Positions 47,689 through 58,700 of a stretch of 64,000 nt of DNA are shown here, one piece after another. The stretch comes from Dimorphilus gyrociliatus. Lineage: Eukaryota; Animalia; Annelida. The position numbers were made by a program, and so were the translations under genes. The notes beneath the pieces were generated by a model. It saw only the letters and a program-made list of their open reading frames with translations. It did no database searches and was not told where the DNA came from. The stretch is taken from positions 166,942 to 230,941 of the forward strand of contig CAJFCJ010000009.1 of assembly GCA_904063045.1 (NCBI GenBank), given 5' to 3'. The first letter of the stretch is position 1. Every line of letters starts with the position of its first letter.

Positions 47689-47917
47689 TCATAATTTATG
47701 GGTATCGTATAGAATTATTCAGCTATTACTGAAATATATCTTCAACATAAACAATATAACCTAAATACGCAAAAACGTCCTACTCAAAATAGGGTGCGAT
47801 TATTTTCAATCACCCATAGTCAATTAGTTCGAACAGTCCAATCAATAAACGCCTTTTAAATCAATGCAAACTAGGTTTGGCTCGCCGCGTTGTTTAATTA
47901 AAATTCAACTGATCGGC

Positions 47918-48823
47918 ATGGCGAAACGAAATAAAAAGAATTCAACCGAGGACGATAGTTCCGGCTATTTAAGCGATGAGGGCACTGGACCTAGGATTTT
48001 AAAAATTATATTACCTAAGGTTCAATACGACGAACCAGAAATACTTGATGAAGTATGGAAGGAAAAGAAAGTATCAATAACAGCGAAAAAAAAGAGCCCT
48101 CGTCTTCTCGGCTACCCTCAAACCAATTATTCTTTAGAAAAAGAAACGGAAGATTGGTCTTGGCTTAGGCATGCTCTTCATCAACGACCTCGATTTGAAC
48201 CTCTTTTGCCGACAAGCCCGAGGAGGAAAGTCTCACCAAATCATGTTGATTCATCGCTTAGAGTACAAGGTCAATGGCTATATCGACCTACACTATCAAA
48301 CCCTAAACCAAAGGAAGTGAAAGAGCGTTTGGATGATCGTATGGAATCGATTGCCCGTCTCTTACCTCGTGTTTCCGGTGAATTAGCGATATTAAAGGCG
48401 AAACGCCGTAGAGAAGGTCAAAGAAAAAAAAAGAATACAAAGATTTTCTGCGACGACGATGTTCGTCAAACATTAATATGTGTTCGTTTGAATGATAGAT
48501 CACTTCAAAGCATTGAACATCAAACAGTGCACAGCAACGTCGGTCCACGGCAGCATATTCACGTTCAGCATTATTTCAAAGAGACACCACTTCATATAGA
48601 ATCGTACTTTGGCATGGACGAAAAAAAATTACCACCAGTACGAGCTCCACCGTCTACACCAACTGACTCTTGTACAAATAGAGAAGCAACAACAACAAAC
48701 ACGCCGGACAAGTTACCTATTCCTAAAAGACATTCTATTAAGTTACCTCAAATTAATGAAACTAAATTCCTAACTGCATCTTCAACAACTTCTCACTCGG
48801 CAGCAGACTTTGATAGAATTTGA
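47918..48823 (+). CDS. Uncharacterised basic, Pro/Ser/Thr-rich protein, single exon, about 301 aa (upstream in-frame ATG at 47864)
   Basis: 960-nt stop-free frame; Lys/Arg clusters (KAKRRREGQRKKKN); no domain recognised. Confidence 0.7.
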   Translation: MAKRNKKNSTEDDSSGYLSDEGTGPRILKIILPKVQYDEPEILDEVWKEKKVSITAKKKSPRLLGYPQTNYSLEKETEDWSWLRHALHQRPRFEPLLPTSPRRKVSPNHVDSSLRVQGQWLYRPTLSNPKPKEVKERLDDRMESIARLLPRVSGELAILKAKRRREGQRKKKNTKIFCDDDVRQTLICVRLNDRSLQSIEHQTVHSNVGPRQHIHVQHYFKETPLHIESYFGMDEKKLPPVRAPPSTPTDSCTNREATTTNTPDKLPIPKRHSIKLPQINETKFLTASSTTSHSAADFDRI

Positions 48824-48999
48824 CTAGGGGACAGTCAGTTTGTATAACAAATAAAAAAAATACAAATTAATTAGTAATTTGCCTTCTGTATTTGGGGAAT
48901 AAACACAGAAATTGATAATATTAAAAAATATCCGATACTTTGAAATTACAAAGACAACCATGAATTAACACGAATCATACTCTAAAGATTTCTAGTTCA

Positions 49000-49649
49000 T
49001 TACTTCCGTTTAAGGGAATGATTACATTTTTCAATAATACACTTCAGATTATCATTACAACCAGCAGTTAAAACACAGTGTTCTAAACCGCTACCTGCCC
49101 TCTTTGGATATATTCTTTGACCATCTTCATTACTAAGGCATACTCCAGCGTCATTTAATTTACATATTAATTCCTTCAAACGATTTTCGCATCGGCTGCA
49201 GTCTTTTCGTGTTGCTTGGCTACAAAGTTATTGGAAATAGACTTTTCTTGTAATTATCTTTTATCTTTACATATTAATACAGTATATATATATATATATA
49301 TATATATTCTTATTTATAATTATACATAGACGTTACCTTTAATTAAATTACTAAGTAATAACTCACCGCCAATTTTTTAAGAAAGAATTCGCTTTGAAAG
49401 GCATAACGATATCTGAAGGAAGAGACAACATCATAGAATCCAATAGTTTATTTGCTTAAGGAATCATAACATAAATTAATTTACAAGTAGCTAAACTATC
49501 TAACTTTATTATATAATAAATATACAGTATATGGTTATACTGTATACTATATTCCCATTGATTTCTTATCTATTAAGGTTGTTTTTTAGACAGAGCTTAC
49601 CGAATTGAAAGTGAAGGCATAGTAATATTGTATAAAATTGTAGTAACAT
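49000..49649 (-). CDS. Cysteine-rich secreted prepropeptide, 3 exons (49649-49601, 49454-49367, 49219-49000), 118 aa; not in the ORF track
   Basis: Manual splice gives MLLQFYTILLCLHFQFANKLLDSMMLSLPSDIVMPFKANSFLKNWRQATRKDCSRCENRLKELICKLNDAGVCLSNEDGQRIYPKRAGSGLEHCVLTAGCNDNLKCIIEKCNHSLKRK*. Donors GTAAGC and GTGAGT; phases 1 and 2 match; signal-peptide-like N-terminus; 8 Cys after the pro-region. Confidence 0.8.
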
Positions 49650-50731
49650 GTTGATGATTTACAATCTGAACGTTGAATAAAAGCAGAGTGTAGATTTGAA
49701 TTTCAATTAAGTCGGCAAAGAGAGTACACGTTTCTAATTTTACGTTTTTTATTCGATAGAAATTCAATTTCTCTTGTAAATTTTTATGTAAAATATCTCA
49801 GAGAGTAAAAAAACTAAGTCGTAGGAAGGAAATAAATATAGAATTATATCAATTTACTATGCTATACCTTATAGGCATTTTGTCAAGATAGATAATATAG
49901 CTTTGGAAAAAAAAATATTTTAATTAGTCTGGTTTAGATTAGAACAAGTTTATAGTAAATGTTCTTTTTTTAACCTAGAGAATGATAATTTTACTTGTGG
50001 TCTCACGATTAAAAAAATGTACTAAAAAATGAAGAGAGATGATGACTAATCTTGATAAATTTTTAATTTATTCCTTTCTTCCTCTTCTCTTCAATTGTTG
50101 ATTGTATTAATACTTTATTTTATTATATATTTTCTTCATTTAACTAATTTTTACTTGCTTATTTAAACCTATATTTCCTTAATTATAATATCTAATCATA
50201 CAATTAAAGTTTTGTTTCTAAGCTCTCCCTTGCCCTGCCTAGTCCCTTCTCATTTATTTAATCTATTGATTCTTTTACAGAGATAGAATGGAATGATAAA
50301 AATTCCAAAATCTAAAGATGCATCAATCGGTAGATGGCGTTCTTATTGTCTAGGTGGAAAGAATTTAATATAGTCAAGTTGGATTACAACTAAATTTCGT
50401 TTTGACGAAATAAAAAAAGAAGAAAACTCATTGCCTGCAAAGTAAAATGCACCTGATGCGTTCGTTAAAGGAAAGTGTTGTGGCAACGGAAAGGGATAGA
50501 AAAGAGGTTTAATTCCATCTTCATCGATCGAAATACGAAAAAAATTCTTGGATCGTCGGCCGGAATTGATCGTAAATTGAGACTTGATCGGCCGACAAGC
50601 GATCGTATCTGGGCGCCTGGTGCCCTTGCATCCTTTTGTTACTTCGTTTCTTGTCTCCGTGCTGCTCTTTAGTATACTTTTTCGCGTGAATTCTATTTGA
50701 AGTTTTATCAAGCTGACACAAACCGAACAGT

Positions 50732-51850
50732 ATGTTTAGTAATGCAACAACAAGGACGGAGAGTTGGTTGATGGGCAGTATAGCTTGTACAGGTATTCTA
50801 ACAAACCTTGTATTACTACTCGTTTTTTGTTTTTTACCAAATTTAAGGAGACCTGTAAACGCTTTCCTTTTGCATCAATGTTTGTTGGATGCTATAAGAT
50901 CGGCATATTGCATTCCCTTCTCTATTATTGAAGTCGAGCCACCAACTATTTGTAGTGCCTTGGCAGGCACTTACATAGTCTTAGTCACATGCGCTTCATT
51001 CAACTTGCTGACTATTGTAATGAATGAAGTATATTCCTTCTCGGATATAACTTTAGGAGTGAACGCATCTCAAAACTGTTGCTGTGTGTGGTTTGCCCTA
51101 GTCGTTATCTGGTTTGCCGCAATTATCACAAACCTGGGAGTTGCTTTTATGCCTGGAGGAAGATCAGCAGAACAGTGCCAGTTTGTTACTGGCGTAACAA
51201 GCAATTATGTTTTGCACGTGGTTTGGTTACTATTGGAATCTATGGCAACTTTAATGACAATCTCTTTTCTCCGCCGAATGTCAAATGATGTGTCACGTTG
51301 CAATTATTACAGATTATCTACACTTGTTCGAGCGACTGTCTCTATTGACCCAACAGTACAAACTTATTCTCAAAGGAGACGATCGGTCATGATCGACAAG
51401 AGAAATATAAGAGAAACCGTCAGAATGATGAATTACAAACTGCGAATACTGACGACCTATACGACTCTCTTTATTATTATGTGTCTGCCCCTATTAGGTC
51501 TGTATGCAATAGAGCCCTGGGTAAACGCATCTCCAGAAACTTTTCAATTTTTATCTATGTTAGCTTGGTCGCAACCTCTTTTGACACCTTTTGCAGTTTA
51601 TTCATTGATTCGCGCGTCAGGGGGATTTTCGGCTGACCCAGCACAATTTCTAAGTCCTTTTATACTTGGACATCGTTCGTCAGCTGAAGGTGATCCACCA
51701 ATAGTCAGAATAGAAACGAGAAGTAGTACTTTTGTAACAGGCGATGTGTCACCTTCAGACTCGAGATATAGCTTTTTCCCGAGTATAAGTGCTGCTGCTG
51801 CAGTCTGCACAGGACCGCGGGGACGAAGAGCCAGCTCTTTTATAGTATAG
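50732..51850 (+). CDS. Intronless orphan class A GPCR, 372 aa, with SREB (GPR27/85/173)-like TM1-TM2
   Basis: Seven hydrophobic segments; N-glycosylation sequon NAT; TM3-ECL2 cysteines; LRRPVNAFLLHQCLLDAIRSAYCIPF resembles SREB TM2; DRY and NPxxY not canonical. Subfamily is tentative. Confidence 0.75.
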   Translation: MFSNATTRTESWLMGSIACTGILTNLVLLLVFCFLPNLRRPVNAFLLHQCLLDAIRSAYCIPFSIIEVEPPTICSALAGTYIVLVTCASFNLLTIVMNEVYSFSDITLGVNASQNCCCVWFALVVIWFAAIITNLGVAFMPGGRSAEQCQFVTGVTSNYVLHVVWLLLESMATLMTISFLRRMSNDVSRCNYYRLSTLVRATVSIDPTVQTYSQRRRSVMIDKRNIRETVRMMNYKLRILTTYTTLFIIMCLPLLGLYAIEPWVNASPETFQFLSMLAWSQPLLTPFAVYSLIRASGGFSADPAQFLSPFILGHRSSAEGDPPIVRIETRSSTFVTGDVSPSDSRYSFFPSISAAAAVCTGPRGRRASSFIV

Positions 51851-54639: not shown

Positions 54640-55689
54640 TTACAACAGACTGACTGCAGTTGCACTATTGGTCGTTTGACGAGCTTGAGAACGGCATTCA
54701 ATCTGCAGAGGCTGGTGCGTTCGATAGGGTTTAGATGCAAAACAACAGAGTAAATATCTGTTGTAATAGGAACGGAATTGTTTCGATAATAGGTACAGGG
54801 AAATTGGATTAACGCAGGAGTTAATGAATGCTAAACAGAAGCTAAATATCTTAAAGAAGAGCCAAAAAGTTGACCAGCGGTCTTCTGTGAAATGAAACCA
54901 AAATACATAGATATGTCTTGGCAACCAGCAAACGACGAAAACTAAGACAAATGCTAAAACTAACTTGGCTACTTTCTTTCTAGATTCTAGCTGCTTATTT
55001 GAATTTGAACCGTATGAAGAACATTGACCCTCCCGGAGCTCTCTTGCACTTTTAATTAGCATTCTCGCCATTAAGAGATAAAAAGCAAAGATAACTAGAA
55101 GAGGTACACTAAAATAGATAGTAAAATCGGTTATGACTCTAACTTTGCTATACCAAGAGGGCTGAGAATTTGGGTATCTAGTGCAAAAAGATATGGTTGA
55201 TACATTTGTAATTTCCACATCTGATAAGATTCCATCAGGTAGAGCTAACAGACTTGCCAATAACCAAATTAAGGAGGCAATTATTAAAGCAAATTTAACC
55301 GGTGATACCTTTTTGACATGCTTCATTGGGTTGACGATAGCATTGTAACGGTCAGCACTTAGCGCTGTCAATGTGAACACGGAGACTCCTACAGAGAGAG
55401 TTTGCAGATATTCGCTAAGTTGGCAGACAACTGTTCCATAGGGCCAACTGTCGAAAGTGAAGATTGTAGCTGTAAATGGGACGGCAATAATTATGAGAAG
55501 CAGGTCTCCACAGGCCAACGAAACTATGTGAATATTTGGAGCGTTGTGTAAAATCTTATTGCGAATAATTATGAGTACAAGACTTCCATTTCCTATAACT
55601 CCAACAATGAAGATGAGGAAGAAAATAACAGGAACGAAGTATCCAACAATAATTAAAGCTAACGGTTTTCCATGCGTCGTATTGTTCAT
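54640..55689 (-). CDS. Intronless bombesin/CCHamide/endothelin-type neuropeptide GPCR, 349 aa
   Basis: GVIGNGSL; PNIHIVSLACGDLL; SVGVSVFTLTALSADRYNAIVNPM; FVVCWLPRHI; LAFINSCVNPISLY. First ATG at 55689 (MNNTT); the ORF-track start at 55752 is a GTG. Confidence 0.9.
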   Translation of the reverse strand: MNNTTHGKPLALIIVGYFVPVIFFLIFIVGVIGNGSLVLIIIRNKILHNAPNIHIVSLACGDLLLIIIAVPFTATIFTFDSWPYGTVVCQLSEYLQTLSVGVSVFTLTALSADRYNAIVNPMKHVKKVSPVKFALIIASLIWLLASLLALPDGILSDVEITNVSTISFCTRYPNSQPSWYSKVRVITDFTIYFSVPLLVIFAFYLLMARMLIKSARELREGQCSSYGSNSNKQLESRKKVAKLVLAFVLVFVVCWLPRHIYVFWFHFTEDRWSTFWLFFKIFSFCLAFINSCVNPISLYLLSKQFRSYYNRYLLCCFASKPYRTHQPLQIECRSQARQTTNSATAVSLL

Positions 55690-55734
55690 TGCCGAACTCG
55701 TGCCCCAGGCTAGTTTGCACAAAGAAAATTCGTC

Positions 55735-55746
55735 AGCGCATGCGCT
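55735..55746. promoter_or_regulatory. NRF1/EWG-type palindrome AGCGCATGCGCT
   Basis: Perfect 12-bp palindrome containing GCGCATGCGC, 46 bp upstream of the receptor ATG. Confidence 0.5.
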
Positions 55747-58700
55747 ACGCACATATGCAAATTATATGTGGCGCCTTTTTGTCGGAGCCCGCTTTTTATT
55801 TTTCATTCAACATCCTAAACACTTTGTTGAAAAAATTAATTAATAGCATTGCCCTACTTTTCCACTATTTGATTTTCTAATCGGACAGTCCTTCACTTTT
55901 TTATTAGAAATAAATGAAAAATATTAATAACGGAGAAGTAAACTACAGTTCCCTTTTCGGGGGGGAAAAATATCTAAAGTGCGGAAGAAAAAGAAGAAGC
56001 AAAAGTGTCTTTCTTTGATGGACGTCATTTTCTTGAAAAAAAACGTCAGCTAGACGTTTCCCGAGTACCATCACCGTACACTCTATCGTTCTAATTGATT
56101 TATTCTAGTAATTCGAAACTGCCATGTGTTTACAATGCAGAAGTTTATTGCTATAACGTTACTGTGAAGCTAATTGAAATCTACTCAATCTCCCACCAAA
56201 CTTCTTTCTCATAAACGCTTGTCATATTACTCATAATCGAAGAAAATCGTTAAAATCATAAATAAAAAAAATCAGAATTCGATTGAAAATAATCAGTGAT
56301 GGAAGGAAAATAGGAAGAAAGTAAAAAAATGTGTGAATTTGTTTAATTAAAAGTTATAAAAACATAAAGCTGTGGAAAGCAGATGTACTGGAATATCAGT
56401 AAACAGCTGGAATTGTTAAAACCGTGATACATCACTCTTAAGCTGTCAGAGAACGAGGTAAAACTGACGAAAGAGTATTAGCAATCGGAGAAGAGACGAT
56501 TTTATCGGCAAACATATTCGATTCGGCTAAAAAGAGGGGTGCAAATGGCAATTGTGCATCAATGCAATCCTATTCCCTCAACGAATGTTGAGCAACGTAT
56601 ATACACAAATATCATGCAGCATATAAATACACCTACTTTTCCGCTCTTCAATAAGCTACATTTCCCCTATAAAAGTGCGCATCCTCCTGCTATATATTAT
56701 TTTATATATATATATATTTTGAGACTAAACCGCAAAGAGCAGTGTCATTTATATAGTTATGTATTCTATTTGTTTATTAGATTACATATCCAATTATGCG
56801 TGTTTGTACAGTCAAATAACAATCAACAAAACAATATTATTATACTCCAAACACGTGACAAATAGTAAAACCAGACTCCTACGTATCGGTAACAATCAAA
56901 TAGATTTTTTTCAGACGCCGCCCAGAATAATTCGATAAAGAGTAAACTTTACTAAAGTAATCAGCTGAATCCGGTCCCCTCGCTCAGTTCTTAGGCCTAC
57001 TTGTTTAACTGATCCTAAAGGCGATTTTTATTAATGGGTCGGATAGTAAAAGTAAATGTGCATTCATAAACTTTTCAAATACTACATTTGCAAAGGTGAA
57101 TAGCATTTGCAGCCTCTCTCTCTCTATCTATCAGTGTTATTTACTATAATATATCTACATACATCTCTTTTCGCGTGTTGCATCACTGGAGCTGCCCAAA
57201 AAATCTTGGAATTTAGATGCTAATCTACATCGATATATTTCGGCCTTAGGCCAAAGAATCTCATAAATTGAAAGAGAAGTTTAATGACGATTGAAGGCAG
57301 AGTGAAATACAGAAACACATGAATAATAGAGTCAAGGAGAATGATAGTTTAAAGAAACTTCGATAATTATCTCTCTTTTTTCTCTCACTCCCTTCCCCCC
57401 TATGACTTGACACTAGCAACCTTTTCGGTATTATGCAATATCTCTTTTCTTTTCTTCCCGATTTGCTCTCCCTCTTCCCCATCCTTTACGCCAAACTCAC
57501 TTAATCATATTTTTTCCTATTACATTAACAGCGTATAACAAGAACATTTCCTCTCAATTTTCTCACATTAAACCTAAACTAAAGAGCAAACTTTAACTAA
57601 AAATTTCTACCTATTAGTAAATAACCGTGTAAAATTTTTCCGCCATGATTTCCCTACAAGTGGTAGCAAGTGGAAAAGTTGAAATTGAAATTCCATAGGA
57701 AAAAAGTTCATTCAACCAGAACAATTTTGTCGCTAATAGATGAGAAAGAGGAAAAAGGGAAACCGTTCGTTTCTTCTGTCCAAACACAGTATAAAAATTT
57801 TGGAATATTTTTTAATAAAAAAGAAAAATAAGAAATAATTCAAATGAATAACTAAGTAACATTATACTTTTTGGGTTAATTGTCTTATTAATTTAGTTAG
57901 AAATTAATTACGAAAGTTAATTTGAATAGGATAAATGACTTAAAAGTTTGGTTTTTTGTATTATAAACTATCTCAATTAAAAAAGAAATCAGTTATAGAT
58001 AATTGATATTGTTAACATATACATACACAAGCGCGCATACACATTACACACTCTCTTCCTTTCCTTCTTATCATGAATAAAAAGGCATATCTCTGCTATG
58101 CTAATTAAATAATCCCTAAATAAACAAGAGGGTTATATTTCTCATTGGATTTTTTTTAACAGTAATCGTTCTTGTGGAATCTTTTTGAAGATGTATAGAA
58201 TATCTAGAATATATAGTTTACAGATATATTTTATGTAAGAGTGCCCATTAACTCTTTATAGGTCTATCAATCAAGCTACGTTTGTAAATATGCTGTTTAA
58301 CTTATCAAGTCGAGTCTGTTTTATCCATTTGAAAACAGGAGACGATTATCCTCTTGGGGTAATGGAGTAAGAATCGGTAAAGTATGCTATTTTCTTGTTT
58401 ATGTTCTTTAGAAAAGAACTCTAATATACAGCAGGAAATTTTTTTCAAAGCCTCTAAGCAAGTTACATCTTATTTTAGTCTCCTGTCGTAGAAGAGAACA
58501 AATGGGGGTCGACATGGACATAATTAAGTATGAATATAGGAAAGGGTAAATAGCATATGGCGTGATCACCCGGCATGAAAGGTTGATAAAAATTTGACAG
58601 TATATCTTATTAGCATTGATTTACAGTCCTCTTTCATTGTTCATTTTGTACTAAGTAAATATTACTCATTTATCCGATAGGTGGCTAAAATAATGTATTT

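Follow-up and report, generated by a model that had tools for sequence, protein, structure and literature searches.

A short three-exon gene on the minus strand of the 64,000-nucleotide stretch of Dimorphilus gyrociliatus DNA analyzed here (the window) encodes a cysteine-rich precursor and, together with one paralog on another contig, appears from the sequences to form a two-gene orphan family of eight-Cys proteins in this genome, a family that seems to be undescribed. The gene is transcribed, both of its junctions are spliced, and its open reading frame (ORF) is complete. The reading that best explains the whole of the observations, to which a probability of roughly 0.55 is given, is that the product is a convertase-processed, secreted, disulfide-rich and mainly helical peptide acting as an extracellular signal. 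As a kind of product, small secreted precursors that are rich in disulfides and carry convertase-type sites are already well known.

RNA support for the gene consists of one assembled contig from one public run, the library type of which is not on record; this run contains 44% of the words sampled from the region of the gene. The contigs of the run were placed on window positions 48600-50000, and a contig of 442 nt matched 48886-49219, 49367-49412 and 49601-49662 with 0 mismatches. Both stretches skipped by this contig begin with CT and end with AC on the plus strand and are thus GT..AG in the minus-strand reading, and no contig of the run covered the introns, the 5' flank, or the 55-nt gap to a convergent neighbor. 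Because introns and flanks are uncovered and GT..AG stretches are skipped, the run behaves as RNA. Furthermore, no intronless retrocopy was found in the genome, where searches with exon 3 match two loci only, and the contig is therefore not explicable as DNA. The 442-nt contig carries no spliced-leader overhang; this, as well as the short introns, agrees with the published account of the D. gyrociliatus genome (PMC7854359).

The contig extends the 5' UTR to 49662 (49650-49662, minus strand, to the limit of the contig), and this segment contains a TAA at 49659-49661 in frame with the ATG at 49649. Because the transcript includes this stop codon, 12 nt ahead of the ATG, the ATG at 49649 is the start of the ORF. 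The coding part of exon 1 (49601-49649, 49 nt, ending in phase 1) comprises the ATG and a hydrophobic N-terminus of 16 residues, MLLQFYTILLCLHFQF, which is presumed to be a signal peptide, and it closes at the donor G/gtaagc (49601/49600). The earlier note on this DNA had placed the start, the exon and the donor at these same positions, all of which match the sequence, and the donor is also the one found in the RNA-derived contig. Its acceptor for intron 1 had to be replaced: the earlier model used ttccttaag/C at 49455/49454, which gave an intron of 146 nt, a second exon of 88 nt and a product of 118 aa, whereas the contig uses the stronger site tctcttccttcag/AT at 49413/49412, with the transcript joint at 49412/49601. 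Intron 1 thus measures 188 nt (49413-49600; GT..AG, gtaagc...ccttcag), exon 2 measures 46 nt (49367-49412), and the precursor has 104 aa (49 + 46 + 220 nt); the 14 residues (A)NKLLDSMMLSLPS, encoded by the 42 nt at 49413-49454, are intronic. The two candidate acceptors lie 42 nt apart and are in frame with each other, and a minor longer isoform may be made via 49455/49454, as assembled contigs lose rare variants.

Exon 2 encodes the pro-region D-IVMPFKANSFLKNW-(R) and ends in phase 2 with ..ANSFLKNW-CG/gtgagt (donor 49367/49366). The second intron (GT..AG, gtgagt...tttgtag, 18% GC) had been given as 147 nt with its junction at 49367/49219, and the contig skips exactly these positions (49220-49366; transcript joint 49219/49367). 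A (TA)n microsatellite lies within intron 2, at window positions 49275-49331. For the last exon, 49219-49000 ending in TAA, the sequence and the contig agree with the earlier model; its coding part (49000-49219, 220 nt including the stop at 49000-49002) encodes the end of the pro-region, QATRK, and the eight-Cys domain, and it is followed in the contig by 114 nt of 3' UTR (48886-48999, to the limit of the contig). The GC content is 33-36% in exons 2 and 3, and 18-27% in exon 1 and the introns.

A convergent, single-exon ORF of 319 aa (47864-48823, plus strand) that is rich in Lys, Arg, Ser and Pro and has no Pfam domain lies at the 3' side of the gene. This ORF is transcribed as well, as it is contained in a 1597-nt contig ending at 48830, and the 3' ends of the two genes nearly abut, the last covered base of the peptide gene being 48886 (55 nt between them). 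An SLC12-type transporter ORF and an ORF for ribosomal protein uL16 are located downstream of the peptide gene, and a PNPO-like gene and a 372-aa ORF (50732-51850, plus strand; no Pfam match, E up to 0.001) are located upstream. An intronless rhodopsin-type GPCR ORF of 370 aa (54640-55752, minus strand; PF00001, E 1e-53) lies 5 kb upstream of the peptide gene and is encoded by the same strand, a proximity that may be no more than a positional coincidence.

The exon-3 frame (window 49000-49218, minus strand) comprises 72 residues with eight Cys at spacings of 2, 8, 7, 20, 5, 5 and 4. The pro-region ends in an R-K dibasic site (49204-49209; I-K in the paralog, both genes having an Arg at P6) directly before an invariant Asp-Cys, and the Arg at P6 of this K/D site is encoded by the codon CG/C that is split by intron 2. 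There follow a first four-Cys segment of 33 aa (49105-49203; C-x2-C-x8-C-x7-C) in which RLKELICKL is predicted to be helical, an internal K-R (49099-49104) in a variable Cys4-Cys5 loop, with KR also present in the paralog, and a second four-Cys segment of 29 aa (49012-49098; G.GLE.C.LT.GC..., C-x5-C-x5-C-x4-C) with two predicted helices; all of these features lie on the minus strand, as does the C-terminal K-R-K tail (49003-49011), which the paralog lacks. The earlier note had described a pro-region and, after it, two four-Cys segments with a KR between them, and this order is found in the sequence, where the pro-region ends in a basic site. The Cys spacings were read directly from the sequence, which also contains the internal KR, the C-terminal KRK and the ..ANSFLKNWRQATRK stretch. 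No amidation is expected, because no Gly precedes the C-terminal basic residues. The chance of at least eight Cys in 72 random sense codons of the same composition is p ~0.0014, although a chance origin of the Cys is irrelevant in view of the transcript and the conserved paralog.

The N-terminus had been called signal-peptide-like, and it is hydrophobic: exon 1 has a mean Kyte-Doolittle value of 1.51, and the best 9-residue windows in the N-terminal exons of the two genes reach 1.92 and 2.47. The observed isoform of the window gene has neither a charged n-region nor a textbook -3/-1 cleavage site. With these features weighed together, the N-terminus is predicted to be a signal peptide and the protein is probably secreted.

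A six-frame search of the 77.9-Mb assembly revealed the paralog (G000:C1:473737-473934, plus strand), which is 37% identical to the window gene over exon 3 (E 1e-7), and the reciprocal search from the paralog gave E 5e-8. No third copy was found in the assembly when the window gene, the paralog, and a profile of the two sequences were used as queries; the same two loci were returned. The whole locus of the paralog, as modeled from sequence, spans G000:C1:473482-473937 (L002:1237-1692) on the plus strand and has a predicted product of 99 aa, with exons of 58, 40 and 202 nt (49, 46 and 220 nt in the window gene) and GT..AG introns of 84 and 72 nt in phases 1 and 2, identical to the phases of the window gene. 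Its first exon contains the ATG and encodes the hydrophobic segment MNYSYKYLFIFLLSFNLGK. The codon at the exon 1/2 junction of the paralog is TGT, giving a ninth Cys right after the hydrophobic segment, and the donor of its intron 2 is weak (GTTAAA).

The eight Cys are all aligned between the two genes, with spacings of 2, 8, 7, 18, 5, 6 and 4 in the paralog. The Cys domain opens with an invariant K-D-C-S-x-C in both genes, and R..E..C within the first helix, V-C and G-x-G-L-E-x-C-x-L-T-x-G-C are likewise invariant. The site ahead of the domain reads R-Q-A-T-R-K before D in the window gene and R-S-L-S-I-K before D in the paralog, with the P6 Arg and the P1 Lys kept, and the codon of the P6 Arg is split by intron 2 in both genes (CG/C and AG/G). 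A KR is positioned 6-7 residues ahead of Cys5 in both genes, and the Cys4-Cys5 loop of the paralog is basic overall (RRKSVKR). Nei-Gojobori counts between the window gene and the paralog gave a pS of 0.79, which is saturated, and a pN of 0.43; because the synonymous sites are saturated and the non-synonymous sites are not, the duplication is old and both copies have been under purifying selection. That so old a paralog has lost neither the basic sites nor any of the eight Cys strengthens the prohormone-like reading proposed in the earlier note.

To predict the structure of the domain, AlphaFold2 was run on a two-row alignment of the exon-3 products of the window gene and the paralog, and the resulting models have pLDDT values of 59.5 and 69.2, respectively, which is low to moderate confidence. 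Both models are mainly helical, with three main helices at approximately residues 13-22, 43-49 and 57-66 (exon-3 numbering). The KR-bearing Cys4-Cys5 loop has a pLDDT of <50 in both models and is their lowest-confidence internal segment, which fits, as expected, a predicted exposed processing loop. Foldseek searches of the PDB with both models returned no match at E <1, the highest Z in a wide VIA-align search was 3.5, for small helical bundles of a generic kind, and a search of the Atlas by shape reached TM <=0.43 with unrelated bacterial proteins. With models of such quality, a blank result in fold searches says nothing for or against a new fold.

Relatives were sought elsewhere with the exon-3 translations, which were used for both the sequence searches and the folds, while exons 1 and 2 (16 and 14 whole codons) were translated and inspected. 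Pfam searches with the two exon-3 translations, run to an E of 10, assigned no family, and the paralog had zero matches; a match of the window gene to PSI_Plexin-B (E 0.15) is sub-threshold and was dismissed as chance. A word-index search of 5.8 billion protein clusters with exon 3 yielded no candidate, a feature search of the ESM Atlas yielded no usable match, and a sequence profile search of the PDB gave chance-level matches only (pyrrolysyl-tRNA synthetase, E 0.4). An exhaustive HMM search of 1.84 billion representative proteins produced two matches (E 8e-9 and 8e-4) to proteins of 603 and 1399 aa; these are tandem-repeat proteins whose scores are summed over 6-7 units, both are without the eight-Cys pattern, and they were rejected as relatives. 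Among metagenome contigs there were 159 pattern matches, 0 of which were confirmed by tblastn, and a search of the accessible literature returned no description of such a peptide in D. gyrociliatus.

Neither protein library returned the gene's own product, and the gene is thus apparently unannotated in public protein sets; together with the RNA-derived contig, this substantiates the earlier claim of a real, spliced and unannotated gene. Small multi-exon genes of other animals would escape these libraries as well, so that the absence of relatives is only weakly tested. The suggestion that the family is undescribed consequently stands in part: no HMM or Cys-pattern match to a described family was found, but the protein libraries lack the gene's own product.

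The architecture of the gene resembles that of insulin/relaxin precursors, as it shares with them a small secreted precursor with two helical Cys segments and a flexible loop bearing basic sites, the three-exon format of a small gene, and an expected disulfide-linked two-chain product; in the paralog, RRK..KR would moreover excise a mini connecting peptide. The Cys patterns differ. The A-chain signature of insulin, CC-x3-C-x8-C, is absent, there being no CC and the second segment reading C-x5-C-x5-C-x4-C here and C-x5-C-x6-C-x4-C in the paralog, and the B-chain C-x11-C appears (Cys1-Cys3 = x11) only when Cys2 is ignored. The Cys are distributed 4+4 in the peptide gene versus 2+4 in insulin, and molluscan insulin-related peptides have a split of 3+5. 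The Pfam Insulin profile PF00049 matched neither protein at E up to 10, and in a genome-wide scan with this profile the only locus above the cut-off was G000:C62:13193-13405 on the minus strand (34.5 bits), which presumably holds a genuine insulin-like peptide gene; ilp is named among the neuropeptides of this species in the genome paper (PMC7854359). The resemblance to insulin is one of architecture and not of membership, as the Cys patterns and the profile that can be tested all speak against the latter.

Saposin-like proteins (SAPLIP: NK-lysin, amoebapores, caenopores) are likewise small, helical and disulfide-stapled, and proteins of the NK-lysin type have C-x2-C in their first amphipathic helix and C-x5-C further along the chain, a likeness that serves as a lead only. 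The domain described here differs from them in having eight Cys rather than six, and its Cys lie within a much shorter stretch (59 residues between the first and the last); the Pfam profiles SapB_1 and SapB_2 gave no match at E up to 10, and no saposin was among the fold-search results. The neurohormones CHH/ITP and eclosion hormone were rejected because the eight Cys have another spacing than these six-Cys patterns and no neurohormone Pfam profile matched at E up to 10. Macins and CS-alpha-beta defensins were rejected as well: the models, though of low confidence, are essentially helical, the chains are near neutral or acidic, and no macin or defensin was among the sequence or fold matches. 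For twin-CX9C (CHCH) proteins, the spacings of 2, 8, 7, 20, 5, 5 and 4 are unlike two C-x9-C motifs, and no CHCH Pfam match was obtained. The earlier statement that insulin, saposin, CHH/ITP, eclosion hormone and macin patterns are unmatched is confirmed by HMM or by Cys pattern.

A further comparison is with the lineage-specific Cys-containing proneuropeptides (pNPs) of annelids; Platynereis-only pNPs with putative disulfides are listed in PMC3890597. The likeness extends to a short precursor with a signal peptide, basic sites and several Cys, to the lack of orthologues beyond a narrow lineage, and to discovery by transcriptome or genome mining only. In the portion of the Platynereis neuropeptide supplements that was available, the motifs KDCS with the Cys pattern, GLE.C and LT.GC matched chance 4-mers in large proteins only, and no small precursor in that portion of the PMC3890597 supplements contains the motifs of the eight-Cys family, motif matching being a weak test.

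From these observations the following course of processing is proposed. The hydrophobic N-terminus would act as a signal peptide and direct the protein to secretion. Convertases recognize (K/R)-Xn-(K/R) with n = 0, 2, 4 or 6, and basic motifs of this type are found at the boundaries of the conserved peptide in both genes. An enzyme of the prohormone-convertase/furin type (subtilisin-like) would cut after R-x4-K, just before the invariant Asp-Cys, and thereby release a four-disulfide domain 61-67 residues long; on balance, the sequence motif makes a cut that frees this domain probable. The KR in the flexible Cys4-Cys5 loop would also be cut, and a carboxypeptidase would trim the ends, including the KRK tail, to give chains of ~33 and 29 residues, or of 32 and 27 for the paralog. 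These chains would stay joined if any disulfide crosses the loop, and would otherwise come apart as two separate peptides; in the paralog, cuts at RRK..KR would excise a tiny connecting piece. Cleavage at the internal KR into two chains is plausible, with the odds somewhat against it, and dibasic pairs can arise by chance in basic loops. The final product would be an extracellular signal (hormone, neuropeptide or pheromone) and not a defense molecule, a reading suggested by a charge that is near neutral or acidic, the lack of gene expansion, and selection that is purifying rather than diversifying. The bolder proposal, an undescribed annelid family of two-chain, disulfide-linked peptide hormones that reached an insulin-like B-(C)-A architecture independently and has its own receptor, is improbable.

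The product might instead be a single secreted chain with four disulfides, in which the internal KR stays uncut as part of a basic surface loop and which serves as a gland product, pheromone, protease inhibitor, cocoon or adhesive component, or defense protein. In the predicted structures the two halves form a single small helical domain, the loop RRKSVKR of the paralog is basic overall, so that KR may reflect charge and not processing, and the C-terminal KRK is absent from the paralog. Such an uncut chain is nonetheless rather unlikely: KR is kept at a like distance from Cys5 in both genes despite 63% divergence and indels in the loop, the loop that contains it is predicted to be disordered and exposed, and a conserved basic cleavage-type site also stands ahead of the domain. 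For an antimicrobial or toxin-like Cys-rich peptide, used in defense or predation, the chances are slim. Lineage-restricted, fast-evolving, secreted Cys-rich orphans do typify immune and venom repertoires, and no relatives were found in the searches. Against this, the net charge of the uncleaved mature domain is small (+2.9 and +0.8 in the two genes) and that of the predicted chains is mostly acidic (-1.3, -1.1, +1.7 and -3.2), so that with a near-neutral domain a classical cationic antimicrobial peptide is not favored; moreover, the family counts just two genes and has not expanded in tandem, dN lies far under a saturated dS, which is contrary to the diversification that toxins and antimicrobial peptides commonly show, and the predicted fold is all-helical rather than CS-alpha-beta or knottin.

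An intracellular metal-binding protein or a protein of the mitochondrial intermembrane space, the N-terminus of which would not be a signal peptide, is very improbable. Eight Cys that include one C-x2-C could coordinate metal, and secretion is only predicted; but paired CxxC/CxxH knuckles and a twin Cx9C motif are absent, no Pfam zinc-finger or CHCH profile matched at E up to 10, and both paralogs open with a hydrophobic segment of 16-19 residues in a region that is otherwise unconserved. The notion that the ORF is untranslated or non-functional and that its features arose by chance could appeal to the RNA evidence being a single assembled contig. It is scarcely credible, and effectively refuted by the paralog, which keeps the frame, the intron phases, the eight Cys and the motifs even though synonymous sites are saturated, a pattern that requires selection on the protein; for this reason a chance ORF is ruled out.

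Small multi-exon peptide genes such as this one are systematically missed by gene prediction, and here a transcribed gene was not found in 5.8 billion clusters nor in 1.84 billion representatives. The neuropeptide complement of D. gyrociliatus has been reported as 'canonical' (PMC7854359). If the product is only a lineage-restricted secreted protein, the gene is one more orphan Cys-rich gene, and its value lies mainly in the correction of the annotation. If the product is a signaling peptide processed into two chains, it would add an orphan ligand to this miniature annelid, and as a signaling peptide it would, with its one paralog, offer a compact two-gene system in which a new ligand-receptor pair may be found.
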